A DNA stretch of 64,000 nucleotides from Macrostomum lignano (taxonomy: Eukaryota): NCBI GenBank assembly GCA_002269645.1, contig NIVC01000304.1:75612-139611 (forward strand), written 5' to 3'. This document shows positions 10,075 through 57,904 of the stretch, in pieces (position 1 is the first letter of the stretch; the number at the start of each line of letters is the position of its first letter). Made by a program: the position numbers and the translations under genes. Under the pieces are notes generated by a model, which made no database searches, was not told where the DNA came from, and saw nothing but the letters and a program-made list of their open reading frames with translations.

Positions 10075-10720
10075 TTTATCTTTTCTTTTATCCCCTCTTT
10101 CGCTTCTCTTCTCTTTGAATTGTCTATTCCTTCTTCTTTCCACTCTCATCTGCCCCTCAGCCATGAGCTGGATTCTTTATCTGGCCTTTGAGGTAAAAGT
10201 CTGCCCATCCCTGCTTGGAAAGCCAGTTTGTGAGATGTAGTACTCTCATGGTTGTTATCATGCTTTGATCACGTCATTTTTCTTGCAAATTTGCAGCCCT
10301 GAAAGGAATTTGGGTATCTTCAGCTCCACTGCAGTCTGCATCAGTCTAACAACCAAGGAAATACACATTTCTTAGAAGGCCATTTAAAATTTACACGGTA
10401 CCTTTAAACGAAACCTAAAATTTCCATGGTGTGCCTAATTTAGTAGGGTTGTATGTATTTCATTGCATCGCATCGCCTTTTCATAAATCTTTCGCTTTTA
10501 CAAACCATGCTGGTTAGTGGATTCCCTCGATTTGCCAATTGCCAATTGCCATCCACTGTTAAACTGCTGCAGAGTTTGCCAATACAGAGGGGAGGGCAGT
10601 GGTTAGAATTTCTCACTAAACTGTCATGGCTAAACGTAGCCTCTCCACTCTGGGGGTGCAGAGAAGGCTATTAAAAAGTTATTCCAAAACACTGTACATT
10701 TGCTATGTACATTCAGTCCT

Positions 10721-11404: not shown

Positions 11405-12122
11405 TATCCCATTTCAATAAATTATATGCTTTGCTTAATTTTCTTTGCCTTCAAATTTATTACAAAATTAATGTGCAAGTTTAAACAAATTGTAATATAG
11501 TTTAACTAGAAAATTTTAACTATATGTGGAAATACAAATAAATACAATATTTGAGATGTTAATTATTAAATTAATTGTTAGGCCCTACTAAATTTAATTA
11601 CCATAGAAATATAGTGTTGATAGTCATAAATCTGCTTTGTTACCAAAATGGCTATTATCAATCAAAGTAGGCCTAGTCATTTTTGTTACTAAAATGGCAG
11701 TTACCAAAATGGCTATTACTAAAGTGGATTGCATTCTTTATGATTAGGCCCTATGATACAAGTTTTACTATTTTACAAGGATAAGCCAATAATATTGGGT
11801 GCTGACCATTTTGGTGATAGACCACTTCGGCGAAGGCCACTTGGGCAAAAGACCATTTTGGAGAATCAACTTTGGCAAATGAAATGACCATTTTGGCAAA
11901 GCCTGTGAAACATAACAAAACATTTGTTTAACGAAACAAGATAACAGTATGCTAGTACATACAAGTTTATCTCCTGCAAAGAAATTAATATCTGCTTTCT
12001 GTAATACGAGCGTATTGAGTTCATTGATCTACTTAGCTATAATAATCTTAATAAAACCAATGTGCCAAAACGCCTTAACTATTGCGAAGAGATTTTGTGT
12101 GACGTAATTGCCACATTTTGGG

Positions 12123-23400: not shown

Positions 23401-26400
23401 CCGTCACCACCACCGCATCGACCTGGTCCAGCACGTGGCTGCCCCGCCAGCGGTCATCGAAGGCGTCGCCAGTCTGAAAGAAGCCGCCGTGAAGGAACAC
23501 CAAGACGGGGAGGTCATTGACGCCCCGGTCCGAGTGCGCGGGTGTCCACAAGTTCAGGTAGAGGCAGTCCTCGGAGGTCGCGAGCGGCCCCGGCTGCGGA
23601 CATGCGGGCTTCGGGCTTATCGCTAGGAAGTCCTCGCCTGCAGGGTAAAAGGAAGTCGGTCGTGGATCAACGCTTAGTTGCTAGGGCAGGACTCAATGTG
23701 GGACTCAATGTGGGACTCAATGCGGGACTCAATGCGGGACTCAATACGGGACTCAATACGGGACTCAATACGGGACTCAGTACGGGACTCAATACGGGAC
23801 TCAATGCGGGACTCAATACGGGACTCAATGCGGGACTCAATGCGGGACTCAATACGGGACTCAATCCGGGACTCAATGCGGGACTCGAGGCTGGTAGCGG
23901 CAGCTCACCGAACGGATCCGCCGGCTCCGGAACAGCAAAGCGCTTCCCTCCGATGGGAGGCTTGGCGTAGGGCAGGCCGAGAAACTGCGTCATCACTTTG
24001 CCAGCGGGGGTGCGGATCGTCTGGCCGAACGTCCTGCCCAGCCCGAGAATATTCACGCTGTAGTTCCGCAGCACCGTGTTCGAGAACGGCTGCGCACCTC
24101 CTGGCGAGATTCGCGGTGGCTGAGGCGGCGGCGGAGGCTGCGGAGGAGGCGGCGAGGCGGACAGGTTGCTGGCCAGCGACATCTCGGCCGACCAGAGCGG
24201 ACAGCGGCCGGGCTCGAAGGCGAAGCCGCCGCTTGTCAAATTGACGCCGGTTTTGGCGCCGAAGCGCAGGAAATCAAAGGCGCCGGCGCTGCTGGAGGGC
24301 CAGCCGGGACTGGGAGCTGAAAGAAGCAATGAAAGCGGCTCTTGTAGCAGCAACTCTGAGCAGGAATTTGAAGCAGCAACTCTGAGCAGGCATTTGAAGC
24401 AGAAACTCTGAGCAGGCATTTGAAGCAGCAACTTTGAGCAGCAACTCTGAGCAGGAATTTGAAGCAGCAACTCTGAGCAGGCATTTGAAGCAGCAACTCT
24501 GAGCAGGTATTTGAAGCAGCAACTTTGAGCAGCAACTCTGAGCAGGCATTTGAAGCAGCAACTCTGAGCAGGCATTTGAAGCAGCAACTCTGAGCAGGCA
24601 TTTGAAGCAGCAACTTTGAGCAGCAACTCTGAGCAGGCATTTGAAGCAGCAACTCTGAGCAGCAACTCTGAGCAGGCATTTGAAGCAGCAACTCTGAGCA
24701 GGAATTTGAAGCAGCAACTTTGAGCAGCAACTCTGAGCAGGAATTTGAAGCAGCAACTCTGAGCAGGCATTTGAAGCAGCAACTCTGAGCAGGCATTTGA
24801 AGCAGAAACTCTGAGCAGGCATTTGAAGCAGCAACTTTGAGCAGCAACTCTGAGCAGGAATTTGAAGCAGCAACTCTGAGCAGGCATTTGAAGCAGCAAC
24901 TCTGAGCAGGAATTTGAAGCAGCAACTCTGAGCAGGCATTTGAAGCAGCAACTCTGAGCAGGCATTTGAAGCAGCAACTTTGAGCAGCAACTCTGAGCAG
25001 GCATTTGAAGCAGCAACTCTGAGCAGGCATTTGAAGCAGCAACTTTGAGCAGCAACTCTGAGCAGGCATTTGAAGCAGCAACTCTGAGCAGGCATTTGAA
25101 GCAGCAACTCTGAGCAGGCATTTGAAGCAGCAACTTTGAGCAGCAACTCTGAGCAGGCATTTGAAGCAGCAACTCTGAGCAGCAACTCTGAGCAGGCATT
25201 TGAAGCAGCAACTCTGAGCAGGAATTTGAAGCAGCAACTCTGAGCAGGCATTTGAAGCAGCAACTCTGAGCAGGAATTTGAAGCAGCAACTCTGAGCAGG
25301 CATTTGAAGCAGCAACTCTGAGCAGGCATTTGAAGCAGCAACTCTGAGCAGGCATTTGAAGCAGCAACTCTGAGCAGGCATTTGAAGCAGCAACTCTGAG
25401 CAGGCATTTGAAGCAGCAACTTTGAGCAGCAACTCTGAGCAGGAATTTGAAGCAGCAACTCTGAGCAGGAATTTGAAGCAGCAACTCTGAGCAGGAATTT
25501 GAAGCAGCAAATCTGAGCAGGCATTTGAAGCAGCAACTCTGAGCAGGCTTTTGAAGCAGCAACTCTGAGCAGACAGTTGAAGCAGCAACTCTGAGCAGGC
25601 ATTTGAAGCAGCAACTCTGAGCAGGCATTTCAATCACACAACTGCCTGAAGAACTCACCTCCACTAGCAGTAAAATCGACCAGGTGCTGCATCATGATTC
25701 TGGACAGGCTCCTGTGCTCAGCTGAGTAGTTCGCTCGCACCAGCGGCTCTCCCAGCAGCACCTTCGCATCATTCGCCACCGACAGTGCAGCTGCGGGATC
25801 GCCATCCTCATCGTGCAGGTAGACGAACACCCGGCCTGAGCCAATCAGGTCGTTGGCGGCCTCCCAAACCGGACAGACGGCGCCAAAGTCGGACAGCGCG
25901 CGGGCCAAAATGTGGCGGACGCGGCCGCCGTAGGCGAAGTGCGGCCAGTCGGACAGAGTCAGCCGGAGGTAGCGGCGCCCGCTGACCGAGGCGTTTCGGC
26001 CGGCCGAGTGGAGGCGGGGAAACTGGCCGAACTCGCGGTCCAGGATCTGCAAAGTGGCCAGGTGGGTCAGGTGGGTGACAGCTGCAAAGTGGCCAGGTGG
26101 GTCAGGTGAGTGACAGCTGCAAAGTGGCCAGGTGGGTCAGGTGAGTGACAGCTGCAAAGTGGCCAGGTAGGTCAGGTGAGTGGCAGCTGCAGTGGCCAGG
26201 TGGGTCAGGTGAGTGACAGCTGCAGTGGCCAGGTGGGTCAGGCAGCTGCATGGCTGGAACGGCACTGCATGAAGGGATCAGGGAGCTCAGCTCAGCCCCA
26301 GCTCAGAGCAGCGCGCCACTCACGGTCTCAAATGCCGTCTGGTCGAGCGCGCCCCAGTCGGCGCCCTGCACGCGAAGCGCCAGCTCCGCCAGCGCCGGGC

Positions 26401-33525: not shown

Positions 33526-35739
33526 AGCCTTGGTCTCAACTTTTAGTCTGGGAGAGCCAGTAGGACTGCGGCGACTGCCAACGCCGCTGCGAGCTTGCTG
33601 CCTCTTCTGGGGAGTGGCGTATTAAAAATTATTAAATATGAAATGGGCAGCTTTGCCTGTCTATCTAGTAGAATCTAACTGATATGTGCTGCACCATATC
33701 CTGATAAAATTTTCTATTATTGTTTTCTATGAAGGCTTGTAATCTAATTCTATTATTACTGTTGCTAAGCCTATAACCAATAAAGTTAAAAATAAATAAT
33801 GATTTACAACACAGTTAAAATCAATATCCTAAAATTATGACAGCTAATTGCTTTTAAAATATCTTTTTTAATATGCTTTGCCAATAAAATTATTTAATAA
33901 GATCTAAAAGGTCTATAAGAATGATTGGATAATTATTTGGACAAAAACAACAAAAAATATATGTATTATTATGCATTTCTATAATTTCTAAATAGACTAA
34001 ACTTTGGCAAAAACAAATGAAAATTTAAGTATTTTTCTTGACTTCATAGGGTAGCTAATTAGTTATAAACTGACATGAGTCATAGTTATGATAATGAAGC
34101 CTTTCAAAAATTTAATTATATGAAAAAGCATCTTGTTCCTATAATGGTCAAGATTGTATATCAACTATATTAAAAACAACATTGCTGTCTACACCCCATA
34201 GTCCTGAGTATAAACTATATATGAAAGAATTTTATGCCCTGCATAATTGTAGAAGTGGTTAATAGTTTCTAGGAATATAACAGTTTGAATCTGCGCTAAT
34301 AATTCATTTTATTCTACAAAATATTCTATATATTCTACATATTCTATATATTCTCAATATTTAATATTTGTTAAAAATACACGCCTTTGAATAGTATAAA
34401 TAGGAGCAGGCTGAGAAGAAGAAGAGATAACTCGTTCAATAGCTATAAGCTCAAAACGTGTTCTATAAATCGTTCTCAGATCATTGTTCATTTCTAAGAG
34501 TATTGTAAAGAAGGTTGGAGGTTGCAATTGGGATTCATGCAAAGAGTAGTACCAAGAGTAATCGCTGTGACCCTCTAATCTCGGTAACGCCCAGACTAGA
34601 GAGAGAAAGTACATATACCAGTAAGACCGCTCAGGCCATATACTAAGAATGCTACCAGACTAATACATAAGACGCTACCAGACTAATACATAAAATGCTA
34701 CCAGCATATCCAAATGGAATTCTAAGAAACAGTTAGAAATACCAAAGGCAGAATTTAGTATCAGCAGTATAAATTTAATAGAGGGAAATTGAAAACCTGC
34801 TACAACTTGGTGACAACAGTGGGATAGTTGGAGGACAGAAGTAAGCCCCACGACAACTTTGGTTATAGCGGTAGGATTGTGTATCGTATGGGAACACCCC
34901 TAGCACAACTTGGTGTCAGCGGCTGAGATTTCTAGAAAGAGGAATCAGCCCTGCGACATAATGTATATAAGAGTAGATCAAATCCACCACATGTGTATTC
35001 ATATATCAAAAGAGGGATATAAACTTTCAATGACTGCAACCAATCAATTTGGCTATTACTTGCATTTTTTAAATGATTTCAATATAATCTTTTCTATATC
35101 CAATTTTTCTTGGAAAAAATAAAAATAAAAACTTTTTTCTAGAATACAAAATTTGTAACAGGATTAAAAATGTTACTTAATATAATTTATTTTACTCTTT
35201 ACAAAAAAGTATACATGTTATATAGTTCTATCTTTTTTATACTAGACTATTTAAAAAAATTCTTTTTTATTGGTTTTTTCATTAGGTATTTATGGCAAGG
35301 CTAGGTTTAAACTTATGCCAAAGATTTTAAATAAACCTTATAAGTAAGCAAATAGATTATAGAAACCATGGAAAAGGTAAAGATCAAGTTATATATAAAT
35401 ATAAGTATATCATATATTTTAATGATATTTATTTTTAATGGAATATATACAAAAATAGTTCTAAAGGTTGGAATTTAGCAGGTTCAAAATCTGTGGGTTT
35501 CAACAGCTAGTTTTTTATAATTATAATAATTCCTTGAAAAAATGAGGAACTGCACTAAATTGATACATTTTTCAATTTTACTAAGGGCCAAATACTGGTT
35601 TTATATTAAGATACACTATTACATTAAAGTGTTTAACATGATACCAAAAATTTTGTCAAAAATACAGCCATAATATACCATTTTTGATAGAAAAGTCTCA
35701 TGTGCAACAAGGTCCTAGGCAGTTTAATACACAGCAATA

Positions 35740-37960
35740 AGAACAACAAAGTACACTGTCAGGTGGAAAAAAAGCAGTGTCACAGGGCATGCTTCAGAGC
35801 CTGGGTGCAAACAAAGGCCACACCACCAGCAGAGTCCAGGGCACCAGCGTCGGCCAGCAGGCAGTCAATGAAACGCCAAGTTTGGGCCTGGCCACACCAG
35901 TAGGGTGCCTGCAGCATTAGCAGCAGCACCTCTTGCACTAGCTGCGGGCAGTAGGCTCATTCCATATAAGATGGACATATTTGGAAAATAGAAAAAAGTC
36001 AATATTTTTGCTTGCCATTGCCTAATTAGCCTATTTTTTTACCAAATGTTTATATTGTGCAATATATACAATCTAAGAATATAGGAATGGTAAAATGTTG
36101 GGTTAGTATGTTATCAATTGGCAAAAAGTCATTTTTGTAAAAATTTGGACATTTTTCGAAGCAAAAGACATCATTAAGATTTTGTACCTTTTAAAAACAA
36201 ATAGAAAGCTTTTGAAGGTTGAAACAAACTATAGATAAAAGTATAGTACTTGCATCATCAGATAAAAGCATTGGTGACCAAATAATCTATTATATTTTTA
36301 ATGTATTAGTACCTCAAAGTTACTGAATTGACAGAAAAAAATATATTACGACCATAATGTTACGACCATAAGGCTGCCTTTTCTTTTGTATCTTTGTTGC
36401 CTTTTGAGTTTATATATTCTAATAAAAGAGTATGATTTCTAAAGATGTTCTTAGTCAAATTTTAAAAATGTATTGCAAAATATCAAAAATGAAAAATGTT
36501 ATAAGACTTTTACCTTTTAGTTTCTATATGTCAAAAATCCTGTCGTTACGACCATAAGTGTCATTTAAGGTTTAATAGCATCTATACTAATGATGATATC
36601 TATATGAAACTCTATAAATATATTCTAGACAAAATAATCTTTCATTTAAAATATTGGTTTAGTATATTCTATTATTAGATTTCATTTTATAAGTAAAAAT
36701 AACCTGTCATGTTACGACCATGCTTATATGGAATGAGCCAGTAGGACTTGGTGCGGATGATGTGGCCTGCCAGCTGGTCGCTGAACTTGCAGCAGTTCAC
36801 TTGGATGGGCCAGGCTGGTGCGGCAATAGAGTGCCGCATTAGTGATCCACTCGTGGCTGATCTTAAAGGTGGCGCATAGCAGGCCAGCATGCACCACATT
36901 GACTTGCTGTTTGAGCAAATCCGTCAGCATCCAGGTCTTGGCATTGTACAACAGGATGATCTCGACCACCACCTAGAACAGCGCTGCCCTCTGGCGGTCA
37001 GGTAGGGCCTTGGACTGCAGGACCACCCTCACAGAGCAAAAGGTAGCCCAAGCAAGCCCGCGGCAATGCCACAGATCTTTGCAGACGTCAGGTACCAGAC
37101 TGCCAAGGAAGACGAACTGCTGACAATGCAGAAGCTCCGTTACCTGCCCACCAGCACCTTGACAGAAAATTGTGGCCTCGATGTCGCCCTGCACACAGAG
37201 CACAATGGTCTTTGTGTTGACCACCAGGGTGATGCTTGCTGCAGTGCTACTGGCACTGAGCACCCTCTATGGTCGAGGACAGCAGGGCAAGGTCATCAGC
37301 ATAGCCAACCACACTGAGCCATTTCTCTAGTTGATGTTGACCCATGCGTTGCCACAGTAGGAAGCCATCTTTGTCAATGGGAAGAGCAGTTTGTAGCACC
37401 CAGTCAAGCACCAAGACAAACAGGAAGGGCACTAGAGTGTCCCCTTGGAGCACCCCAGAGGATGTCTCAAAGGAGTCCAACAGGCCATCCGGCATCATCA
37501 CAGCTGCTCTTGTAGTACAGTACAATGCCATTATGGCAGAGATCAGCTGTTCTGGTACATGATATGCATGGAACACATGTGGGAGTGCAGCCCTTGCAAC
37601 CAAGTTGAATGCCTTCATGAAGTTAATGAAGACAACAATCAGGTCCAACTGGCGCGTGTGTGCCTCCTCAATGATTTGGCGAAGAGCTAAGACCTGCACT
37701 AGCATACCACAATAGGGCCAAAACCCATTCTACTCAGGTCGCAGGTAGGGATCCAGTATGGGTTGCAACCACGATAGCAGCATCCGGTTGAACAACTTTG
37801 CAGCATAGGATTGCAGGCAGATGCCTTGGTGCTCATCTAGCCATGTAGTGCCCAGCTTTTTTGGAATGGCAATGATGTGCACCATGGTCCACTTGGTAAG
37901 TGTCATTTCACCACAGTTTAATACTGTATATATAGTATGCATCAAGGAGTTGGCAAAGTT
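35740..37960 (-). mobile_element. Degenerate RTE-like non-LTR retrotransposon (RT domain to 3' end), split by a MITE
   Basis: Broken ORFs with IIAIPKK..GICLQSYAAKLFNRMLL, FINFMKAF, GVLQGDTLVPFLFVLVLD, GYADDLALL and ILLYNAKTW. The reading GHIIRTKSY|CPQLVQEVLL is restored when the MITE and one TSD copy are removed. Confidence 0.85.
35954..36739. mobile_element. 786-bp MITE, copy 2, 4-bp TSD AGTA
   Basis: Same TIRs and body as 9291-10074; AGTA at 35950-35953 and 36740-36743. Confidence 0.93.
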
Positions 37961-38735
37961 CTTTTGGTATGTTTAACATAGCAGTGCTATATATAGGACT
38001 CTCTATAGGAAAAAGTTGTAAAATGCGGATGGCGTCCAGAGCACTTTTGAAATTTTTTTGAAGCATAGTGCGTGCATAGGCACATAAGCCCTAGCCTAGT
38101 GCCTGCATATGCACTTTCCTTTTCTATTGGCTGCTGCTCTAGCAAATAAATATATATAAAAGGGGGCCTAATACCTTTGGGCCTATACACTTATCATTTA
38201 TAATGCTTAAAGATGTTCCAAATTTTCCATTACAATTTCCCAACATTTTTTTAAAGTGAATTTATATCTTTTAAAATTCAAAAGTCAAAATTTTGGAAGT
38301 ATCTAAAAAGTGGCTAAAAATAAACTAATTTCTATTATATATAGGCCTACATATATTTTGTTATGCATAAGCAGTAAATCAAAAGTAAAAAGTGAGTATT
38401 GGTCATAATAAACTTTGTTTTTCTAAATTTGATTTTGGAAAATTTCAATTTTAATTTCAAAAAGTTCACAAATTTTGATTTTGACAAAAAATGCTATTTT
38501 GGAACATCTCTAATAATGTAGCATCCAGAGCAAAAAATTCTCATGTATACAGTGTATATTTGGTACTAGGTCTATAGCCAACAAGAACTAGGGCCTATGC
38601 AGTAGGCCTTATACTATACATCTTTTAAATAGGCTAGGGGGCCTAGGCCTAAGTAAATTATTTTGACTTGTCTAGATATAGCCTCTATCAAATTATAAAC
38701 AAACTAAATAATCAATGCAATAAGACCCCTAGGGC

Positions 38736-39309
38736 CAGGGGCAGATCTAGAGGGGGGCCAAGGCCCCTCTCAGCTGCAGCCAAAAAAAATTTGGTCATCC
38801 TTTTTACGAAGAGCTTGCGTGCACGGCAGCCGTTCACGTAAGCTCAGAATTGCGTGCACGGCGGCTATCTACCTAGTGCTTTATTTGCATGTATGCAGCC
38901 GTACACCTAGTGTTGTAATTGCGTGCACGGCAGCCGGCAATTGGCCGGGACTGGGGCCCTTAAATCCACGCATTGGCATTGCAAACCTAATTAAAAAATA
39001 TTTTTACTATATTGTTTTATAATGTTTTATCCCCCGTACACCATGGACTGCAAATGTAATCTTAATTCATTGTTTTTTTGTTAACTTGAATATTAATTCA
39101 AATAGTATATGACTTACTGTATAAGCCTATAAGATATAGCTCTGCCGTGCACGCAATTCTGAGCTTACGTGAACCATGAACGGCGGCCGTGCACGCAAGC
39201 TCTTCGTACTTTTTAGCCTGCTACTATGCTAGGTCTATTTTCCAATATGGGGTTGTAGTGCTTGGTATAGCTTGGCCCCCTCCTCAAAAATTTTCTGGAT
39301 CTGCACCTG
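38736..39309. mobile_element. hAT-type MITE (~170 bp without its insert), 8-bp TSD CCTAGGGC/CCTATGGC
   Basis: TIR CAGGGGCAGATCTAG / CTGGATCTGCACCTG; the TSD copies match at 7/8 positions. Confidence 0.7.
38807..39206. mobile_element. 400-bp TA-TSD MITE (Tc1/mariner-type target) nested in the hAT MITE
   Basis: TA|CGAAGAGCTTGCGTGCACGGC...GCCGTGCACGCAAGCTCTTCG|TA. TIRs are ~55 bp and include CGTAAGCTCAGAATTGCGTGCACGGC. Confidence 0.88.
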
Positions 39310-42043
39310 CCTATGGCCTAGCCCTAGACTAGAGTCTAGACATAAATAAGAGATATACTAGGCCTATGCTTAGGCCTACTATAGGCTACATGCATGATAC
39401 ATAGACCTTAAATTTCTAACTGCATTGCATTGTATCTTAATTTCTCATCTCAAAAGAGTCAACAAAGTTTAAAAAGTACCCCCAGCACCTGGAAAATTTG
39501 TCTATGACATTTAATGTAATTTTTATGTAGTAGGTTTAGGTTAAGCCTAGCTGCCTAGCCCGGCCCCTTGGTCTGGAAAAAAGATAGAAAGAAAAGTAGT
39601 ACTGTACTATCTGCTGTACCGTGTCTTAGTTTCTGTGCTTTATTAAATTAAAATATAGGCCCCTAATACTAAAAGGCCTATAATGTGTTAATATTTTGAC
39701 TGTGGTTGACTGGTTGTTACCATTGCAAGCTCTGGACCATACTTCTGAACGTTTTCTTTTGTTTCCGATAATTCGAAGAAAAATCAGTCAAACTAATGTA
39801 ATGTTTGGCCTTTTTGCTATCCAAACACACAGCTGCTGAGAAATTTTCTAGGCCATTTCAAGGGCTTTTTTGGGCTTAAATAACAAGGGACCTATGGCTT
39901 TTTGGCTTGCAAAATTTTTAATTCCGGGTTTGAAACTCCAAATCGCATTGCAAGCATTGAGCGCGTGTCACGACTCACAATCTATCTAACATGCAGTTAT
40001 CACAGCTAGAGGAGGGTATAAACAACTTATACTCATGTTTATGGATAATACTGGTTAGGGGTCTATGCCTCTCCAATCTGGAAAACCCTCTTTGCATTAG
40101 TTTTTACCACAAATATAAATATTTGAACCCTGTACTCAGCAAGCACTACTTAAGTACATGTCTGCTGGCGTTAGAATGCTCACGTCGATTTTTTCAGGGT
40201 CAAAGCAAACTTTTGGAATTTTTAAAAGCGCTAGAAAATATATAGTTTTACTGGATCTTTTGGAGCTGTAAAATGTTGACATTTTCGGATACGAATAGAA
40301 TCAACCTACATGTAGGTTTCTCGATCATCTCTGACTGCAACCAGAGGAACGGTAGGAACCATGCACGATACTAACATGTAACTTGACCTCGTCGATGTTA
40401 CCCGATTCGGTCTTAGCGTCGTCATAAAGAAGGATGTTTGTTGATTAAGTTAACTGGTTGCTCCATTTTGGGCTTGGGGCTCCTAACGGTTGGTCCTTAT
40501 ACATGTAAAAGGACAGAATTGTACATGTGCTGCAAAAATTGAATTAAGAACAGAAACTAGTACGCTCGTATGTGTAATGTATTTCTTGGCGGAAAATTGC
40601 TAGGTACTAACCAAATTTCCTATTTTTTTCTAATGGCCATCTTCCCTGCACAAAGGCTTCGGGGGTATTTTCGATCAAGCTCGGGATCTTGGCTCTTGCA
40701 TGTGAGTAATTAGGACTATAATTTTCATGAACTAAACAGGCATAAATTAGGGAGTTTGGAATTTGTTAACTCACAAGTCAACCATTCAGTCCCTAAAGCT
40801 GCCAGTCCATGGCCATGTAGTCAGCAGACAGTTAATTAATATCATCAGTTAAAAATCGTACTATACATTAATTGAGATGCAGCAGAGCTGGTTAGCACCC
40901 TGGGGGTGGACTGCAGTATAGCTACGCCTCAGCGGGGATGCGATCAATGCAGTAGGACAGCTGCATAAATATATCGATAATAGCTATATTGGTTTATTTA
41001 CAGTATGCAGCTAGCGCATTCACGCACCCAGTTTACCGGTGCAAAGACGAGTCAAGAGCTCGCGTCCATCGTGCTGTACCGGTCAATATTTTATCTGCCT
41101 TTGAAGGCAGGAATTTTTATGAATTTCCTCTCTCCCTTGTCCTTGTGGTTCAGTTTTTCTAACTCAATAGACTTTTTACTGCTCAGCGATTTATATGCAG
41201 GCTAATAAACAATCGGGCTTGACCGGGGAGTCCTCATGCATGCATGCAGATGAAATGCGAGTATCATGCGTCCACCAAAGAGACAGGGCCGGGCGCCCAC
41301 TCTACGAGCGCGACTACGCTCGTATTATATCTCTCGCCGATTTGCACAGAAAGCCCTTTTAGGCGAGCTCGATAATATTTGCTCCAGTTTAATTAAACTA
41401 AATGCATGAAGCCAACTCTTAATCTAGTCAGCTAATCACTGACTACACCACGTTGTCTACTCGACTAAATTGCAACTGCCTTTTTTCAGCTGCAATGAAT
41501 ATTATTCATGCACGTGTACCTGAGTACCGCAAAATATTGTTTTTGATCCTTATTACCGAAGTAAGAAGCTCGAGCCGCTGCTGCAGATCCTGTATACAGA
41601 CTGCCCAGATCGATGGCGTCCAGAGGAATCCAGCGGGCGGGCCACGGACCTCCCCGTGAGCTGTTCATTTATTTCTCAAGAGGTTTCGACGAAGGACTGC
41701 AGGAGCATTGACTTTTTCCACCTCTTGGACGTACCTCTTGGACCGGCCAACCAAGAGACAGAAGCGCTAACCAAGAAACACTGGCCCCTACCAAGAGTAT
41801 AGGGGCGCCCACCAAGAGACAGGGGCGCCAAAATGAGTATTAGAATGCTGTAGTCTGGCCTGCTTCACCACAGTCAGTATGCTAACAACACCGATTCAAA
41901 TAATAATCCATGGCGACGCCCATGCATAATCTTTTGTCTTTTTCCAAGGCGTTGCTATCATCAATTGTGCTATTGCGTATTTGCAGGTTACATTATAGTC
42001 CCTCACCTCTGCAAATTAATGGTTTGAATAAATAATGAAAGGT

Positions 42044-48800: not shown

Positions 48801-51800
48801 CGAATCTAGACAAATCCTGCAGAATCTAGACAAATCCTGACGAATCTAGACAAATCCTGTCGAATCTAGACAAATCCTGCCGAATCTAGACAAATCCTGC
48901 CGAATCTAGACAAACCCTGCCGAATCTAGACAAATCCTGCCGAATCTAGATAAATCCTGCCGAATCTAGACAAATCCTGCCGAATCTAGACAAATCCTGC
49001 CGAATCTAGACAAATCCTCCCGAATCTAGACAAATCCTGACGAATCTAAACAGATGATGCCGAATCTAGACAAATCCTGACGAATCTAAACAGATGATGC
49101 CGAATCTAGACAAATCCTGACGAATCTAGACAAATCCTGCAGAATCTAGACAAATCCTGCCGAATCTAGACAAATCCTGCAGAATCTAGACAAAATCCTG
49201 ACGAATCTAGACAAATCCTGCAGAATCCAGACAAATCCTGCCGAATCTAGACAAATCCTGCAGAATCTAGACAAATCCTGCCGAATCTAGACAAATCCTG
49301 CCGAATCTAGACAAATCCTGCCGAATCTAGACAAATCCTGCCGAATCTAGACAAATCCTGTCGAATCTAGACAAATCCTGCCGAATCTAGACAAATCCTG
49401 CCGAATCTAGACAAATCCTGCCGAATCTAGACAAATCCTGACGAATCTAGACAAATCCTGACGAATCTAGACAAATCCTGACGAATCTAGACAAATCCTG
49501 ACGAATCTAGACAAATCCTGCAGAATCTAGACAAATCCTGACGAATCTAGACAAATCCTGACGAATCTAGACAAATCCTGCAGAATCTAGACAAATCCTG
49601 CCGAATCTAGACAAATCCTGACGAATCTAGATAAATCCTGCAGAATCTAGACAAATCCTGCCGAATCTAGACAAATCCTGACGAATCTAGACAAATCCTG
49701 CCGAATCTAGACAAATCCTGCCGAATCTAGACAAATCCTGCCGAATCTAGACAAATCCTGCAGAATCTAGACAAATCCTGCAGAATCTAGACAAATCCTG
49801 CCGAATCTAGACAAATCCTGCCGAATCTAGACAAATCCTGCCGAATCTAGATAAATCCTGCCGAATCTAGACAAATCCTGTCGAATCTAGACAAATCCTG
49901 CCGAATCTAGATAAATCCTGTCGAATCTAGACAAATCCTGCCGAATCTAGACAAACCCTGCCGAATCTATACAAATCCTGCAGAATCTAGACAAATCCTG
50001 TCGAATCTAGACAAATCCTGCCGAATCTAGACAAATCCTGCCGAATCTAGACAAACCCTGCCGAATCTAGACAAATCCTGCCGAATCTAGATAAATCCTG
50101 CCGAATCTAGACAAATCCTGCCGAATCTAGACAAACCCTGCCGAATCTAGATAAATCATGCCGAATCTAGACAAATCCAAACCATTATAAACAAATCCTG
50201 CAGAATCTAGACAAATCCAAACAAATCCAAGCTGACATTATTTTCTGCTTTGAAGCTGGCTCAACAGTTTTTACTTTTACCCCGACTGCTTGCACGGAAG
50301 AAGCGAATGCGCGCAATTAGAAGCAATTTCAGAAATTATCCTCCCCCTTAGATTCCCGAAAATTTCTTTAAAGCCAGTACATTTTTATTCGGCATCCAAT
50401 TGTGCTCAAAACAATTTCTACTTCAAAGGCAAAATCTGCTTTGCCAATTTCTATAAAGCTGAAAAGCAATTTTCCTGGGTAAATAATAATGCGGACCGCC
50501 AATTATCGCACCTGGGAAACAATTTCATCCAAAAGATTACAAATGCAGTAAATTATCTTGTCTATCTTGTCTATTTAGAGGAGAGAAGAGAAGAAGAGAA
50601 GATAGGAGAGGAGAGGAGAGGAGAGGAGAGGAGAGGAGAGGAGAGGAGAGGAGAGGAGAGGAGAGGGGAGGAGAGGAGAGGAGAGGAGAGGAGAGGGGAG
50701 GAGAGGGGAGGAGAGGAGAGGAGAGGATAGGATAGGAGAGAAGGGGAGAGGAGAGGAGAGGAGAGGAGAGGAGAGGAGAGGAGAGGAGAGGAGAGGAGAG
50801 GAGAGGAGAGGAGAGGAGAGGAGAGGGGAGGAGAGGAGAGGAGAGGAGAGGAGAGGAGAGGAGAGGAGAGGAGAGGAGAGGAGAGGAAAGAGAGGAGATT
50901 ATTAGAGAGAAGAGAGCTGAGAAGAGACACAAACCTTGAGCGGGCCGGATTGCTATTGAGATGTTTTAAAGACGCGGATGTGTCGCGGGCCGGATGAGCT
51001 TGCCGACCCCTGATATACATGAAGATATAAAATCCAGTTCTCCCCCAAAAGAACTGCATCTTCACCTTGAGTACGTGGGCGCTGCACACCAGGACAACGA
51101 TGGCCGGTCCGCCGGACTGCAGCAGGAACAGGCAGCCGGACAGGTAGAGGATCCTGTAGTACTGGTTAGAGTACACTGGAATGTAGGGCACAGTGGAGCC
51201 CAGAGCGAAGTGGCCAGCCGGCTCCAGCGCGCAGACGGTCTCGTAAGCCTCGAACAGGCGCGGCAGCATCGCCAGGGCGCAGAGCAGCGCCGCGCCGACC
51301 AGCACCCGGGCGCAGGTCTGCTGGCGGAACAGCCGCGCGGTGGAGGTGGACCGGCAGACGGCCTCGTAGCGATAATAGCTGAGGCCGGCCAGAGTCCAGT
51401 TGCGGGCCAGCTGAAAAGTGGCCGAAGTCTGCCTGGCCAGCACGGCCAGACCGGCCAGGCCGACCGCCAGGCTGCGGCTGGGCAGCGGCGGCAGGCAGCA
51501 GGCGCGCAGCAGGCTGATGGTGAGAAATCCCGACTGTCCGAGCTGGAAGGCGGTCTCGAAGATGGACAGACCGGTCAGCAGCACGCTGGTGATGGACCGA
51601 TTGAAGGCCTTGTTGATGAAGATGGCAAAAGACAGTCCGTTGGCAAGGGTGTTGAACAGGCACAGCGCAATGCTGGCAATGTCCAGCAGGTTGTCTTCTT
51701 CGGCGAGGGCGGCGGCGCCTCTGGAGGCATTGTAGAGGTGCAGCGGGTCGCAAGCGGTGTTCGGCAGTGCGGGCAGGACTCGGACCAGGCCGAACTCGGA

Positions 51801-51833
51801 CTCGGATGCAGCGGTTTGGTTGGCGGCTGACAT
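45868..51833 (-). CDS. Rhodopsin-family GPCR, peptide (FMRFamide-receptor-like) type; 2 exons, 424 aa
   Basis: Exons 51833-51066 and 46374-45868 (phase 0, 1275 nt). Seven hydrophobic segments: LCLFNTLANGLSF, LLTGLSIFET, RNWTLAGLSYYRYEAVCR, LLCALAMLPRLFE, FLLQSGGPAIVVLVCS, LALTFFVLEMP, DSSMNIFIY. N-terminal NQT/NAS sequons. The donor GTGAAG is weak but frame-consistent. Confidence 0.85.
47268..50220. repeat. 20-bp satellite array (~145 copies) in the GPCR intron
   Basis: GAATCTAGACAAATCCTG(CC/CA/AC/TC). Rare AAACAGATGATGC variants at ~47868, 48348, 48388, 49048 and 49088. Confidence 0.98.
50577..51012 (+). mobile_element. 3' part of the same hAT MITE family with an expanded (GAGAG)n tract
   Basis: GAGAGCTGAGAAGAGACACAAACCTTGAGCGGGCCGGATTGCT...TTGCCGACCCCTG|ATATACAT. 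The 5' end was not found. Confidence 0.7.
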
Positions 51834-52809
51834 GCTGGATGGATGGAAGGAACACTCAAGTGCAGCTGCATGTGAGCCTCTTGTTTCTGCCACTACCTTT
51901 TTACTAATCCTCCTTAAAAGTAATTTCTTTTCTCTAGCCCTATCAGATGGAGAGGAACCCGAGGCCAAGGGGCGGCGAAGCAATTTCCGCCCGGATTGGC
52001 TGTGGCGGCTCCATCCGTGCACTGTCCAGCTTCCCTCAATTGCAGCGAGAGATCGAAAGAAAAACAGTTTTTTTGCGTCCTTTCGCCCTTGCATTTCCCT
52101 TTATTGCATGCGCGATGCACGGACTTGATGGCCGAGAGCTCCGTGATTGTAAAGTCGAGGCTGGAAGTAGAGAAAAGCATATAATAGTGTTGTGTCAGGC
52201 ACACTTATAGTACTTTTTACACTATCTGATCGGCAGATTGCCGCAGGATTGAAGGGAGCCCTCATGCAGCTTTGCAGTTTGTCGCCAGCTCACTACTAGC
52301 GCTGCTGCACCGACTGTCTGCTTTAGCAACAACAGCTGTTTTCTTCACTCCCCGAACCCAGACTTATCCCACATCTCTGTTTGGGGAATCGATAAGAGGT
52401 CACGCGCGCCAGTCTAAGAACAGCAGGCAGTTTTTAGCGCCAGGTTCCCGGCTGGTTCGCGATAAAACTTGTCTAAATCGAGTTCGAGCTACACACACAC
52501 ACCTATGCAGGTGCGCCTCTCAGCAACTGCAAACTATTTACACTCAAGGTACGGTAATGCTGTCAGCTTGGCTGATTCTTCTGTCAGCACAGATTTTTGG
52601 AATGTGTTTATTACGAACGACTGCTTAAAGATTTTTTTTTCAGCCTCACCGCAGTCTGTGCCCGAAAATGATATGTGACCTTCACTTGTTACGAAGGGTC
52701 AAACAATTGACAAGTGAACTGAAATGAACGTTCCTTGTGTAGATCTGGCTTTGCTTATTCGAGCTGAACAAACTGCTAGCTCTAGATGGCCATTTAATTA
52801 GAGCCTAGG

Positions 52810-55800
52810 CACACTGCTCTAGAAGGGCACCGAGGGTGAAAAAAATGTACAGAAGAAAATTTTTGCATTTTTGCACTCAGTGGACTGGCCCTTATACCTG
52901 GGTGTAATATAAAAAAAATCTGCCAATTTGTTTCCAGAAAATTGGCCTTTTCTGATTTTTCTGCAACAGTCTGCTTTTAGTTGTCAAAAATCTGGAAATT
53001 AAAAATGTTGTGCTCAATTTCTTGACTTTTTGGATATGTGGCATTGATCAAAATGTCACTACACAGTAATGACCTCTTTGATGACTGCTATAAGCTGCCA
53101 GGATGTTTCAGCCATAGACAATTTAATAAATTCCATACCTGATGATATTTTCATTATGTACGCTCATAATTCACAAGAAATTAGGAAAATGCGCAAATAT
53201 TAGCCTTATTGCTTTCAAAAAGTTGGCTCTGCCATTTTGCGAAAATTCCGCATTTACATGTATTTCAAACAAAGCTATAAATAAAAAAAGTAGGTATATT
53301 ATCATTATTAATTTGCAAATACTTTTGCTTAAACTGAATGCAAAAAATAAAGGAAGCATTTTAAAGAAATAGTATTAGATGATTTAACAGAATTAGAAGG
53401 TAAAGTTAGTATAGGTGAATTGAAAGAATATAAAAGCATTGTCATTTTTTCATTGCATGTGGCTACCAAGGTGACGCAAGAATTCATCACATATGTCTCG
53501 AGTTGTATATGATAGTGCATCGCAGCAGCCGTTGTGGATACTCTGGATGCGTTAAAGCTGTCCGAAAGCCTCTTGTCCACAGCTGGCCAAAGTCACTATG
53601 GACGGACTCACTCGCCTGTTCGGACCAAAAGCCAAGGCCGCGATATCGAGGCTGCTTCCCATTCTCCATGTGACGGTTTTGGTGCTCAATTTCTGCCTGA
53701 AGAAACTCTGGAACATGTGCTAGTAGCGCATGTACCTTTGGACTAATGTTGATGTCCAAGCTCATATAAGCGCTGGAAAATTCCGAAATGGCTTGCTCAA
53801 ATCCAGGCAGCAGCTCATTGCCAAAGCACAGTCGCTTTACATTGCTGAAGCAGCGCATAGAATGGAGAACTGGCATCGAACTGAAAGCACAATGGTCGGT
53901 CAGGATCTGCTCAAGGATATCGACTCCTTCAAGTATCTTGCTGCATTCATTACCATTGAATGTTCCACCATGCTGCTTTGAACGGCAGATGTTCAGCTGT
54001 CTTGTCCAGGCTGCTGCAGTCACTACGCCACCAGTGTCTGTCGTCAAGCGTGAATCAAGCTCATCATACAGCCTATTAACGATTCCTAACATTAGATGGA
54101 GCTCCATTGGTGGGATCAGCTGTAGAACAGGAACGCTGTCATCTGCATCCAATAGAGGTTGGTGAACACAGTTTTTGAAGCATGCAGCAGAAATGCTTTG
54201 ACGTCTGCTTTTTTGATCATTTGCCTGCTGGAACTCTGTTGCTAATTGTCGAATCCGACCAAGTGTGCGCGAGTTTGCTCCCGAGTTTTGCTGCACGAAC
54301 TTTGACTTGGGCTGCTCGCACCATGGGCAGGGATGCGTGCTGCTACAGGCCTGTAGCCCTAGGATCAAATTCGCCAACTTCATGTCTACGGCACAGATAA
54401 ATGTTACAGCTTCAAGTCGCAAAAGTGCAAGAACTTTCTTCAGGTTGTAATAGCTTTCGCAAACATTTTCAACTATGGCTAGCAAGATGAGCTTCTTAAC
54501 TCCGCTGGCTTGTGGCTCAGAAGATGCTGCACGTTTCTCTACCTGTGCTTCTGGAAGAGAAACATCAATGATGTTTGCGCAGACTTTTAAAAAACCTCCG
54601 CCTCCATCGATTCCGATCTTTACTACAGACTCAGCGGGATTGATCTGGCGGTTCTCCATTATTCGAGACAGCAGCAGACCAACATCTGGGCAGTACGCAA
54701 CGGTGCGCAGCTCTTGTTGGTCTCCCTTAATTTGCAGCGGAAGCTGTGCAACTTCGAAAAACTCTTGAAGAATGATGTCAATCTCTCGAAGTTTTTGCTC
54801 AAGATTTGGCTCAAATGCATTGCGCCCTTGCCATTCGCGTATCTTCTGCGCTGCCTGCTTAGTTTGCCGCTGGCTTAGCCTTAGATCCCGCTGAAATTGG
54901 CTGAACTGCTCTGCAGAAATGGTATCCGCTTCCCTACTATTCAAAGATTGACGTTTCTGCTGCCCAAAACTTACTGTTAAAGATCTTCCACGAGTTGCCA
55001 GCTGGACATTCCTGCTTTCAAAGGGTCCGCTAGAAGCTTCAACCGTCTTCAGTATGTCTGAAGCCTGGATCTCAGCCCCACGCTTGTCCATTAAGAGCTG
55101 CTCAGACAGATTGGCACGCCTTTGTGTAATCGTGCAAGCGTGGCTCTTTCCTCTGCTAATTTTAGAATGGCAGCGTCCGCAAATGGTGACCGGATTGGCA
55201 GACGGCAGTGGGTCCAAACTATCAATCGGCGGGCGCCCGATGGGATGCGGTCGATGCTTAGCCGTTCCTAATCCTTGACCAATAGGATTTTCGCGTGCAA
55301 TCACACAGATTTTGCACTCACATCGAGGACTTTGTCGCGTTAGTGGTGCTAGCAAGACTGACTTCATATTTAAAGCTGCTGGTAGACAATCTCGGGTCTT
55401 AATTCCAACGTCCACATCGTGCAATAAATGTCGGCACCTTGAGCAGATGGCAGTAGGTAGACGAGCATCTTCAAGATCAGCTTCAAACTGCAGCAGACGA
55501 CAGATGCGATCAGAGATTTTCTCAGTGATTGGAGAACATGAGCTACCTTTTTTGAAGCACAGTAGGCAAACTTTGAGCCTGTTTTCATCGTGAGACTTGT
55601 GGCTAGCCATTTTGGTGGGTTGATTTATCCATGAACCAAAAACGTATATATATATATATACACAATAATACTTACGCGACTCACCTGGAGTACACTTCAC
55701 TTGGCTACTCAACAAATTGAAATTCTGATGCAATAAATACACTAGCAGTAGGAAGAGTTGAAATAAGAAGTAGAAAATGTACATCTGTACGTGGATTATG

Positions 55801-56278
55801 GGTCCAATTGATTTTAATTTGTCTACGAGCGTATTCTGTTGTATCAGTCATTGTACTCAATCAGTCAAATAACAAATTTTCCTTTAAACTGATTGTATAC
55901 ATTGATCAAATTATGGTTATGACTCAGCTCCAAGCTATATATTGCCAAATGCATGCAAAATTATAATGTTCAGCATTTGTGACCCTCAAGCCAACTTTTA
56001 TATTGCGCAATTCCCCTAAATTCACGAATTTACATTTGAAAATATTATCACGTATCCAAAGAGTCAAGAAATTGAGCACAACATTTGTAATTTCCAGATT
56101 TTTGACAACTAAAAGCAGACTGTTGCAGAAAAAGCAGAAAAGGCCAATTTTCTGGAAACAAATTGGCAGATTTTTTTATATTACACCCAGGTATAAGGGC
56201 CAGTCCACTGAGTGCAAAAATGCAAAAATTTTCTTCTGTACATTTTTTTCACCCTCGGTGCCCTTCTAGAGCAGTGTG
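52810..56278 (-). mobile_element. Apparently intact autonomous Chapaev-type (CMC group, RAG1/Transib-related) DNA transposon, 3469 bp
   Basis: TIRs 52810-53040 and 56049-56278 (~230 bp, about 5 differences) starting CACACTGCTCTAG. TSD TAGG at 52806-52809 and 56279-56282. Single uninterrupted transposase ORF. Confidence 0.9.
53487..55610 (-). CDS. DDE transposase, Chapaev-like, 707 aa from the internal Met (MASHKSH)
   Basis: N-terminal H-x7-C-x2-C...D..LPxxICxxC...CxCxxC zinc module. Core: KIGIDGGGG (D1), CAVDMK (D2), HPCPWC (CxxC), PMELHLMLG, FNGNEC, PKVHALLAH (HxxxxH) and WSEQASESVH (E). The first 58 codons of the listed ORF are AT-rich and probably untranslated. Confidence 0.9.
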   Translation of the reverse strand: MASHKSHDENRLKVCLLCFKKGSSCSPITEKISDRICRLLQFEADLEDARLPTAICSRCRHLLHDVDVGIKTRDCLPAALNMKSVLLAPLTRQSPRCECKICVIARENPIGQGLGTAKHRPHPIGRPPIDSLDPLPSANPVTICGRCHSKISRGKSHACTITQRRANLSEQLLMDKRGAEIQASDILKTVEASSGPFESRNVQLATRGRSLTVSFGQQKRQSLNSREADTISAEQFSQFQRDLRLSQRQTKQAAQKIREWQGRNAFEPNLEQKLREIDIILQEFFEVAQLPLQIKGDQQELRTVAYCPDVGLLLSRIMENRQINPAESVVKIGIDGGGGFLKVCANIIDVSLPEAQVEKRAASSEPQASGVKKLILLAIVENVCESYYNLKKVLALLRLEAVTFICAVDMKLANLILGLQACSSTHPCPWCEQPKSKFVQQNSGANSRTLGRIRQLATEFQQANDQKSRRQSISAACFKNCVHQPLLDADDSVPVLQLIPPMELHLMLGIVNRLYDELDSRLTTDTGGVVTAAAWTRQLNICRSKQHGGTFNGNECSKILEGVDILEQILTDHCAFSSMPVLHSMRCFSNVKRLCFGNELLPGFEQAISEFSSAYMSLDINISPKVHALLAHVPEFLQAEIEHQNRHMENGKQPRYRGLGFWSEQASESVHSDFGQLWTRGFRTALTHPEYPQRLLRCTIIYNSRHM

Positions 56279-56360
56279 TAGGAAGTAGGCATGAACCGTC
56301 ATATCGGTAGTTTGAAATCAATCAAAAATTGTCTTCTGCATTCAACAGGGAGAGAGGCGG

Positions 56361-56386
56361 GAGAGAGAGAGAGAGAGAGAGAGAGA
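56361..56386. repeat. (GA)n microsatellite
   Basis: Directly visible. Confidence 0.9.
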
Positions 56387-57904
56387 GGCGCTTATGCCAC
56401 TGTGGTCAGAGAGTAGCAAGTCAAATTGATACATAAGGATGGTGCTGAGTGAAGCATCTATAGGGTGTTTAGTATCTGTGGACAACCTAGCCGGCCATAC
56501 AGTAGAGTGTAAAAGAGTTATAAAGCTCATATATTTATTATTATTGTGACATTTTAATCCTTACAGATACGAGTAGATATTAGACTACTCGTTATATAAC
56601 GAGTATTTTCTCGTTGGTATACCGCTTTCGTTTTTAAAAGCCGACAGGCCTATATTGGTGATCAACACGCATGCAGGAATCCTGTATACTAAATATGTAG
56701 CTAACTATACCCTCTCGTATGTGAATTCATCTGAATTCCACATGCTGCAGGCCATAGCTAGAATGTTGGGGGCATGCAATACTCCAATTATGGGTGCGGT
56801 GCAGGAATTTATTACATGCGTATGTACATCGTAATGGCAGAACAGCTGTTCGATACGGGCCATTTATTGCACTTTTGAATTCTTGGCCAAGCAAAAGTTT
56901 TGCACGCCGATATTCGTATTAAGTTATTATAACCATCCGTTATCAACGTAATACACAGCTGTGCCCACTCTGTCAACAACGTCATCTTCTTGGGGTTACC
57001 TGTGATCCAGGATACTATAGATGTACTTTGTCGGCTATAGTCTAACATGCATACGCTCGTACATCGTACGCGATGGAATCCAGATGGTTGATTAATGGCA
57101 TGTTGTAAAATCAAATAGACCCGTACATATACACTAAGCCAATTCAAACCATATGGACAACAGTTAGATAGACGAGGCTGTACTCGAAACTCGTTCGAAT
57201 TTCACTGGCGGCCATCTATTTCTCATCGAATACATTAGCGAGACAAAAGTCTTCAGTTTTCAGCACTAAACTGACAATATCTCACCATGTACATGTCTCA
57301 CCCTATACATATCTCCACCCTATGAATGTAGGTATCTTAGTCTATACATATTGTATCATCTTACCTTATACACAATCCTCTTACTCTACACATACACGAT
57401 TTGTCTGAAACTTAGCTTGCTTGCCGGTCTAGGGGAACATTTAATAATGGAAGTGCTTATCCCCACGGTCCCGTGCCGATAATTCCAATTTTATCCACAC
57501 GGATCAGTGTCAATAACTTCCAGCTTATCCCCGTGGCAGCTTATTGAAATAGCTGCAACCATTCAAGTCTATAAGCCGTGTCAATAATTCCAATTTTATC
57601 CACACGGATAGCTTGACTAAACCGAACACGCGTATCTACCTTGGACAAAATGCGTAACAGGTGCTAGTTAAATTTGAAATTCGAAGTCCAACATGTCTAT
57701 GCAGTGGCTTATACTTATACATGTATCTTTCGCTAAATAATACAAGAGCATGTACATGTACATGTACATATGACACGACAAAGTGTAGCCGGCGTCTCAA
57801 AAACTTTTTTGTGTCATAGCGCGTGTCATGATACATCAACTTGAATTCAGAGTCTGCCGATTTCTGTGGGTTGGAGAGGCTCAGCATGCTAGGGTAGAGA
57901 GAGA

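Follow-up and report, generated by a model that had tools for sequence, protein, structure and literature searches.

A 64,000-nucleotide stretch of the genome of the flatworm Macrostomum lignano (contig NIVC01000304.1, positions 75,612 to 139,611, forward strand), hereafter the window, contains a 3,469-bp mobile element at window positions 52810 to 56278, the coordinates at which a preliminary description of this DNA had placed it. With a probability of roughly 85%, we judge it to be an autonomous Chapaev-group DNA transposon of intact structure. By comparison with published N-terminal fragments and hallmark descriptions, its sequence identifies it as Chapaev proper and places it with Hydra Chapaev-1/2/5_HM, which typify the subgroup without a RING finger. 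Chapaev is recognized (PMC4079192) by target-site duplications (TSDs) of 3-4 bp, by element ends that are invariably 5'-CAC/GTG-3', and by three transposase motifs, C(2)C, LH, and H(4)H. All of these are found here: a 4-bp TSD, CAC...GTG ends, C428-x2-C431, L504-H505, and H627-x4-H632. The assignment to Chapaev proper follows from the complete set of hallmarks, together with the 3-bp TSD of Chapaev3, the 5-bp TSD of Transib, which lacks the N-terminal Chapa domain, and the RAG2-like gene carried by ProtoRAG. The Chapaev-type reading of the preliminary description therefore holds on its TSD, CAC ends, motifs, and Chapa N-terminus, and the TSD rules that it had used agree with the literature, namely 5 bp for Transib (PMC1131882) and 3-4 bp with CAC ends for Chapaev (PMC4079192).

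The insert is bracketed by a perfect 4-bp direct repeat, TAGG, at 52806 to 52809 and again at 56279 to 56282; by chance, all four bases would agree with a probability of 1/256. The junctions read ...GCC TAGG + CACACTGCTCTAG ... CTAGAGCAGTGTG + TAGG AAG..., and the expected pre-insertion (empty) site is ...TTAATTAGAGCCTAGGAAGTAGGCATGAACC.... The terminal inverted repeats (TIRs) are 231 nt on the left (52810 to 53040, plus strand) and 230 nt on the right (56049 to 56278, minus strand). They align with 226 of 231 columns identical (97.8%), the differences being one indel in an A run and four substitutions, and their outermost 108 nt are 100% identical. Between them lies a single-exon transposase gene of 707 codons plus stop (53487 to 55610, minus strand), with zero stop codons and zero frameshifts, which keeps all 25 invariant columns of an alignment of 35 family members. 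An in-frame upstream ATG would extend the protein to 765 aa; this longer frame is unneeded because the homologs begin at the same MxxxxSHxENR position, the equivalent of MASHKSHDENR in the window protein. The remaining open reading frames (ORFs) in the element, all of 125 aa or less, either overlap the transposase gene or are shorter than 100 aa, and none of them is RAG2-like. The preliminary description had reported a perfect 4-bp TSD, TIRs of about 230 bp and about 98% identity, an unbroken 707-aa ORF with the DDE triad and both zinc-ligand pairs, and no RAG2-like ORF. Each of these features was recovered, and the catalytic and zinc-binding residues proved invariant or near-invariant in the family. 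A domesticated gene was also considered and rejected, since the TIRs and TSD speak against it. No further copy or fragment of the element was found within the 64-kb window.

The catalytic residues of the transposase can be laid out in full; all coordinates given for them are on the minus strand. The first catalytic aspartate, D335 (54606 to 54608), is found in 35/35 sequences within KIGIDGGGGFLK (KIGIDGGGG), at the end of a beta-strand in the structural model, and is the inferred counterpart of RAG1 D600. The alignment of the 35-sequence profile pairs the other motifs with RAG1 directly: the second catalytic aspartate, D409 (54384 to 54386), with the D of RAG1 'YDEK' (mouse D708), the C(2)C zinc ligands C428-P-W-C431 (54318 to 54329) with 'CTLC' (C727/C730), the H(4)H ligands H627-ALLA-H632 (53715 to 53732) with 'HKTLAH' (H937/H942), and the catalytic glutamate E668 (53607 to 53609) with the E of 'GNES' (E962). 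The distance from the aspartate to CxxC is 19 residues in both proteins. The LH motif of Chapaev/CMC transposases, L504-H505, lies at 54096 to 54101. D335, D409, E664, E668, C428, C431, L504, H505, and H632 are invariant in the 35 sequences, and H627 is present in 34/35. Upstream, LS-x11-R-x3-GR-xx-F-x-P is collinear with RAG1 'LSCSQYHKMYRTVKA(I/T)(T/S)GRQIFQP', a segment (profile domain 1) that is not significant alone.

When the 35-sequence profile was compared with PDB sequences, meaningful scores were confined to RAG1, with an E-value of 1.8e-4 for zebrafish RAG1 and 0.0068 for BbRAG1L. An AlphaFold2 model, made with the family alignment as input, has a mean predicted local distance difference test score (pLDDT) of 79. 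In a Foldseek search of the PDB with this model, all 38 matches with E <= 0.001 were RAG1 or amphioxus RAG1L (BbRAGL), at the top of the list. These matches have E-values of 1e-11 to 7e-6 and template modeling (TM) scores of 0.5-0.6 per target over 570-690 aligned columns, at 12-14% identity to RAG1 in the structural alignments; the first non-RAG1 match is Hermes (E 0.04). The profile and the predicted structure thus confirm a RAG1-type fold for the transposase core, a kinship visible only by these two routes, and the RAG1-related reading of the preliminary description is upheld by both, since RAG1 and RAG1L are the top matches in each.

Chapaev transposases are defined by an N-terminal zinc domain, Chapa, which they share with RAG1/RAG1L and for which an alignment is published (PMC4411706). 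The corresponding double zinc module of the window transposase spans residues 1 to 108 (55287 to 55610, minus strand), and its residues H7, C15, C18, C56, C59, C97, C99, and C102 are kept across the family. The family profile was compared by hhalign with Chapaev reference N-termini rebuilt from a table read by optical character recognition, errors included (Additional file 5, PMC4411706). It matches Hydra Chapaev-2_HM with a probability of 98.3% (E 1.8e-14, 37% identity) and Hydra Chapaev-1_HM with a probability of 97% (E 1.2e-10), and more weakly the RING-bearing Chapaev-2_BF of amphioxus (E 4e-4). The RING finger is absent from the window transposase, as it is from the subgroup of Hydra Chapaev-1/2/5_HM and Aedes Chapaev-1_AA. 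Pfam zf-AD is matched at residues 14-65 (E 0.0019), and 12 of the 35 family members also match it. The six best Foldseek PDB matches to a model of residues 1-165 are all ZAD domains, among them Pita 7POK (probability 1.0, root mean square deviation ~2 Å, 57-60 columns), CG2712, and Serendipity-delta. A ZAD-like fold has been reported for the first zinc finger of the RAG1 N-terminal zinc domain (NZD) and of Chapa domains (bioRxiv 10.64898/2026.01.24.700457). As judged from the profiles and the model, the N-terminus is a Chapa domain with a ZAD-like first finger. The preliminary description had called this an N-terminal zinc module like that of RAG1. The Chapa and ZAD-like parts of that claim stand, but a direct comparison with the human RAG1 N-terminal zinc domain falls short of significance (E 0.018, probability 2.6%), so that the link to RAG1 is weak when drawn directly and runs instead via Chapaev and the literature.

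C-terminal to the Chapa domain, a GRP motif at residues 125-127 (55230 to 55238, minus strand; G in 28/35, R in 27/35, P in 28/35 sequences) is a candidate AT-hook-like element. It is embedded in a disordered, basic and proline-rich linker of low pLDDT that is otherwise variable. A C2HC zinc knuckle follows at residues 144-159 (C144, C147, H157, and C159; 55134 to 55181, minus strand), with three invariant cysteines and H157 in 34/35 sequences.

The place of Chapaev among DNA transposons differs between authors. It was reportedly filed in CMC by Yuan and Wessler in 2011. It was filed in the Transib superfamily by Kapitonov and Koonin in 2015 (PMC4411706). The element might be a canonical Transib or ProtoRAG-type transposon and not Chapaev, as its RAG1-like fold and catalytic motifs and the closeness of its ends to the Transib consensus, CACAATG-N23-AAAAAAATC, would allow. 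Against this, the TSD is 4 bp and not 5 in both the window element and a relative described below (locus L013), the transposase has a Chapa N-terminus that canonical Transib transposases lack, a RAG2-like ORF is absent, Pfam RAG1 was not matched, nor was HzTransib among the PDB matches listed, and identity to the RAG1 core is remote (12-14%). This alternative is already largely refuted, and we give it hardly any credence.

Membership of another CMC group, CACTA/EnSpm, Mirage, or Chapaev3, would likewise account for ends that start with CAC and for the C(2)C, LH, and H(4)H motifs, which are common to CMC, and seven of the 35 family members weakly match DUF1280. CACTA/EnSpm elements have CACTA termini, a 3-bp TSD, and usually two genes; the window element, with its CACAC terminus, 4-bp TSD, and single ORF, departs from them in each respect, the CACTA pentamer being absent. 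The N-terminus strongly matches Chapaev-1/2_HM, and Chapaev3 N-termini are of a different type. Chapaev3 TSDs are TWA, 3 bp, and CMC TSDs range over 2-4 bp, with 4 bp left to Chapaev (PMC4079192). Another CMC affiliation is thus very unlikely, and Chapaev proper remains our assignment. As for the DUF1280 matches themselves, they are weak (best E 1.6e-4) and to a family of unknown function. We take DUF1280 to be mainly a nematode family; on that assumption, its proteins may have their origin in this Chapaev-type transposase family.

The ends of the element resemble recombination signal sequences (RSSs). Its termini, CACACTG ... CAGTGTG, place CAC at the cleavage end and differ by one base from the RSS heptamer CACAGTG, the left copy lying at 52810 to 52816 (plus strand) and the right at 56272 to 56278 (minus strand). 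Seven A's at element positions 30-36 (52839 to 52845), 22 nt beyond the heptamer, begin a nonamer-like A-tract, AAAAAAATG, at element positions 30-38 (52839 to 52847, plus strand), with its counterpart in the right TIR at 56241 to 56249 (minus strand). AAAAAAATG matches the RSS nonamer ACAAAAACC at 6/9 positions and the Transib consensus nonamer AAAAAAATC at 8/9. In the literature, the Transib TIR consensus is the CACAATG-N23-nonamer given above, and the positions conserved throughout RSSs are just 1-3 of the heptamer and 5-6 of the nonamer (PMC1131882). Both ends read CACACTG-N22-AAAAAAATG, and with this equal spacing there is no 12/23 asymmetry. A palindrome, CACTCAGTG, occupies element positions 65-73 (52874 to 52882) and is mirrored in the right TIR; when the aligned ends were checked by eye, it had no clear conservation among relatives. 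Two further subterminal sites carry an AAAAT(C/G) motif, AAAAATCTGCCAATT at about position 105 (52914 to 52928, plus strand) and AAAAATCTGGAAATT 72 nt deeper (52986 to 53000, plus strand), mirrored in the right TIR at 56161 to 56175 and 56089 to 56103 (minus strand). In all, AAAAT(C/G) starts at ~33, 105/106, and 177/178 from each tip. The preliminary description had pointed to the CACACTG termini one base from CACAGTG, an A-tract 22 bp further in with a 6/9 nonamer, a palindrome ~65 bp in, and symmetric ends. All four were seen at the positions claimed, and the Transib nonamer fits the A-tract better.

To compare ends across the family, eight independent termini were used, those of the window element and of loci L001, L002, L004, L007, L013, L016, and L018, the transposases of the relatives being 28-46% identical. 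Six ends were defined by inverted-repeat detection and not by pattern, and three of the eight were found by a pattern requiring CAC and an A run. The metagenome scan yielded 12 loci, mostly cut inside or before the TIRs, and L006, L008, L017, and L019 end within them. CAC starts seven of the eight termini, the exception being L001 (CAGCGCG). L002 has CACGGTG with GAAAAAATG at 31-39, the right end of L007 reads CACTGTG-N23-AAAAAAATG, that of L016 reads CACCTGT-N23-AAAAAATG followed by AAAAAAATC, and L018 has CACAGCG with A at 31-36. L013, a degenerate copy of 33% identity, has CACAGGT-N22-AAAAAAAT(T/C) termini with the A-tract at positions 30-36, and a 4-bp TSD, TTAT/TTAT. In an ungapped alignment of the eight ends, C1 is found in 8/8, A2 in 7/8, and C3 in 6/8 (the row of L004, which itself begins CAC, is shifted by one base). 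From position 31 to 36, A is found in 6, 8, 7, 7, 7, and 6 of the eight ends, and the spacer is unconserved.

The AAAAT(C/G) motif starts at 32-34 in six of eight elements and at 103-107 in six of eight, and L001, L002, L007, L013, and L018 have the first two positions in common. At the background density of 1.6e-3 per nt, the chance per end is ~0.005-0.008. Among the six TIR-defined ends, the first motif (32-34) is present in 4/6 and the second (103-107) in 5/6, with a binomial P < 1e-8 for each. Because the motif positions are conserved while the TIRs of the relatives are otherwise unalignable, the aligned ends argue that the CAC tip and phased A-tracts are under selection, and that the RSS-like layout is not a one-copy coincidence. 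That CAC and the A-tract occupy the same positions in distant relatives also supports a stronger likeness to RSSs than the preliminary description had claimed.

One could suppose instead that the heptamer-like end, A-tract, and palindrome arose by chance in AT-rich TIRs and have no role. A runs are common in such TIRs, the vertebrate nonamer is matched at just 6/9, the palindrome shows no visible conservation, L004 has no A-tract, and a pattern requiring CAC and an A run had itself found three of the eight ends. This explanation is nevertheless unlikely, given the frequency of phased motifs in the TIR-defined elements, the lack of conservation between the motifs, and the second motif, which was never used to find ends and yet is present in L007 too.

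We therefore favor selected, RSS-like ends, and propose more tentatively that Chapaev-type transposons, as the remotest branch of the RAG1/Transib/Chapaev clade, use at their ends the bipartite code of Transib and V(D)J recombination, in which ~22-23 bp separate a CAC heptamer from an A-rich nonamer, and add to it, in the long TIR, A-tract sites ~72 bp apart that are probably read by the AT-hook-like GRP and a region like the nonamer-binding domain (NBD) of RAG1. This proposal has a substantial chance of being right, though somewhat below even. In the literature searched, the original Repbase Reports aside, we found no paper that ties Chapaev ends to a nonamer.

Several observations weigh against the reading of the element as an intact Chapaev transposon with a RAG1-type enzyme and RSS-like ends. 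The TIRs differ at 5/231 positions (2.2%). The M. lignano relative L001 has CAGCGCG-N21-AAAAAAATC and so does not start with CAC, and L004 starts with CACTGTA and is without an A-tract. No matching TSD was found at the defined TIRs of L001 (M. lignano assembly), L002, or L018 (both from metagenome assemblies), which weakens the 4-bp rule, drawn here from two elements, those of the window and L013, plus the literature. The missing TSDs could stem from chimeric assembly or from recombination between copies; the flanks of L002 and L018 may derive from different copies, because they come from metagenome assemblies of a multi-copy element. On the protein side, single-sequence searches of Pfam and the PDB gave no RAG1 similarity and a weak ZAD match at most, the E-values of the RAG1 profile matches are modest, the rebuilt Chapaev references contain the errors mentioned above, and HzTransib appeared neither in the sequence-profile PDB list (E <= 10) nor among the 50 Foldseek matches listed. 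The absence of HzTransib from the listed PDB matches would be unexpected if Chapaev were simply the sister of Transib, and may be a filter artefact.

A different question is whether the copy is still mobile. It may be a dead relic, structurally intact but immobile, or fixed and silenced in M. lignano, a possibility we rate a little short of even. Only a single copy lies in the window, no identical or near-identical transposase was found among 5.8 billion protein clusters, and the TIRs have diverged by 2.2%. On the other side, the ORF is unbroken with all 25 invariant family positions kept, the outer 108 nt of the TIRs are identical, and the TSD is perfect. An intact, autonomous element remains the preferred reading of its structure. 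Recent activity, deemed probable in the preliminary description, was not substantiated.

The analysis establishes the anatomy of the element, the fold and motif conservation of its transposase, its family, and the recurrence of the end motifs among relatives. By homology to RAG1, ProtoRAG, and Transib, and with RAG and HzTransib biochemistry as general background, we infer which domain reads which DNA motif and the chemistry of cleavage; any activity of this copy is likewise putative. A dimeric transposase would bind each long TIR at the CAC heptamer-like tip and at the A-tract sites (~33, 105, and 177 nt). Recognition of the CAC tip would fall to the core, and that of the A-tracts to the AT-hook-like GRP, to a helical region resembling the NBD, or to both; in RAG1, it is a GGRPR motif in the NBD that reads the nonamer. 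The two ends would be paired by the transposase and cut at the CAC boundary, probably by a nick followed by a hairpin on the flanking DNA, as RAG and Transib do, and the element so released would insert with a 4-bp stagger, giving TAGG/TAGG. The extra sites at ~105 and ~177 suggest multiple transposase-binding sites on one face of the DNA. The 72-nt period between the A-tract motifs is roughly seven helical turns.

The preliminary description had regarded the element as a rare candidate. This is overstated, because a phmmer search against 1.84 billion 50%-identity representatives returned 3,221 family members at E <= 1e-3 and 414 at E <= 1e-30. Many of the 3,221 are full length, the majority of the best 150 matches have 650-750 aa, and the homologs largely lie on 2.5-4 kb contigs from ENA, Logan, or JGI, including environmental assemblies. 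Rerunning the homolog search with the 35-sequence profile brought up only the 12 proteins already found, and a scan of IMG/VR found no relatives. Within this known and fairly large family the element is nothing unusual, and its novelty is modest.

The best named relative, BOX15_Mlig010790g22, is 46% identical and also from M. lignano, so that no fewer than two old and separate lineages of the family are present in this species. L001 (NIVC01000691.1, 5503-8870) is a 46%-identical Chapaev-type element of M. lignano with 216-nt TIRs (99%) and an intact 702-aa ORF. It lies in a repeat rich in GTCT, where the left flank ends GTCT and the right, offset by 2 nt, is TAGTCT, and it has no clean TSD. 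A 2,033-aa M. lignano gene model, A0A1I8I628 ('Arf-GAP...'), holds a 47%-identical fragment, probably because the gene prediction took in transposon sequence. The degenerate copy at L013, on a metagenome contig, lies between 78-nt inverted repeats (3238-3315 and 6631-6708, 96% identical), and appears to have been inserted within an unrelated TIR element.

The other genes of the window include RGS, carboxylesterase, and PHD-CXXC genes, and its CXXC1-like ORF is 98% identical to an M. lignano protein. Window positions 34957 to 40857 are 99.7% identical in DNA to M. lignano NIVC01001827.1. Over the 22.7 kb compared, collinearity with this contig ends at window position 40857 (L021 3451), 12 kb short of the insertion. 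A repeat of ~0.8-1.3 kb at 9289 to 11405 is found twice in the M. lignano reference locus (90-98.6% identical); it and the break in collinearity probably reflect other mobile elements and structural differences. The regions at 18300 to 21500 and 23600 to 25600, in or beside the carboxylesterase gene, are G+C-rich (60-64%) with many short tandem repeats, and there the M. lignano reference differs mainly in repeat register or copy number (staggered BLAST alignments). A long ORF at 50571 to 52094 (minus strand) leads into a tandem repeat of 15-nt units, (LLSSP)n, that looks like coding sequence, at 50571 to 51100, and a (GA)n microsatellite at 56360 to 56392 starts ~85 nt past the right end of the element.

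The complete element offers a substrate-enzyme pair for questions about the ancestor of RAG, including DNA recognition, the age of the heptamer/nonamer arrangement relative to Transib, and the role of the Chapa/NZD domain. M. lignano transgenesis has been reported. Since the element is not unique and has many intact relatives, its value is that of a well-annotated example with comparative evidence on the ends. The comparative lead is that a heptamer-spacer-A-tract code, earlier tied to Transib, ProtoRAG, and RSSs, appears to be conserved in Chapaev-type elements, with a further phased site. If this is true, the heptamer-spacer-nonamer architecture would predate the split between Chapaev and Transib, and a RAG2-independent enzyme would be at hand in which to examine it. 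Outside RAG1/RAG1L, a RAG1-like N-terminal zinc domain is consistently kept by Chapaev transposases alone, which are described as experimentally untested (bioRxiv 10.64898/2026.01.24.700457).

Among known systems, the element is most like the RING-less Chapaev elements (Chapaev-1_HM, -2_HM, and -5_HM, and Aedes Chapaev-1_AA), whose reference sequences are said to go back to Repbase and to Kapitonov and Jurka in 2007. It has their Chapa pattern, HxENRxKVCxxC ... P..IC..C ... TRxxxxCxCxIC, their DDE core with C(2)C, LH, and H(4)H, their CAC...GTG ends and 4-bp TSD, and no RING finger. It differs from Hydra Chapaev in its new host, a flatworm, and in an N-terminus that is only ~32-37% identical, and from Chapaev as described in its 230-nt TIRs with A-tract sites 72 nt apart, of which we found no description, Repbase Reports aside. 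Chapaev3 elements (Garfield, Conan, and Chapaev3-1_AC) are similar in their CAC termini, CMC-type catalytic motifs, and Cys-rich N-terminus, but have TWA 3-bp TSDs, are shorter, with TIRs of 11-19 bp, and in the published alignment have N-termini of a CxNxxD...FCYICG type that is unlike those of the window element's family.

With Transib, for example HzTransib, the element shares a single ORF, a length of ~3-4 kb, a transposase of ~700 aa with a RAG1-type DDE core, and a TIR tip made up of a CAC heptamer, a spacer of ~22-23 bp, and the A-rich nonamer AAAAAAATC (8/9). Transib differs in its 5-bp TSDs, its short TIRs of ~38 bp, and its lack of a Chapa domain. With RAG1 and RAG1L, the likeness lies in the core fold, the DDE triad, the C2/H2 zinc site, the 19-residue D-to-C spacing, the upstream LS...R...GR..F.P motif, and the ZAD-like N-terminal zinc domain, and the RSS and ProtoRAG signals likewise begin with CAC and have an A-tract ~23 bp in. 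The RAG2 partner, RING finger, and 12/23 asymmetry of RAG1/ProtoRAG are absent from the element, and its TSD is 4 bp, not 5 bp. For the sites at ~105 and ~177, the subterminal repeats of CACTA elements are a closer likeness than the compact signal of Transib and RSSs.

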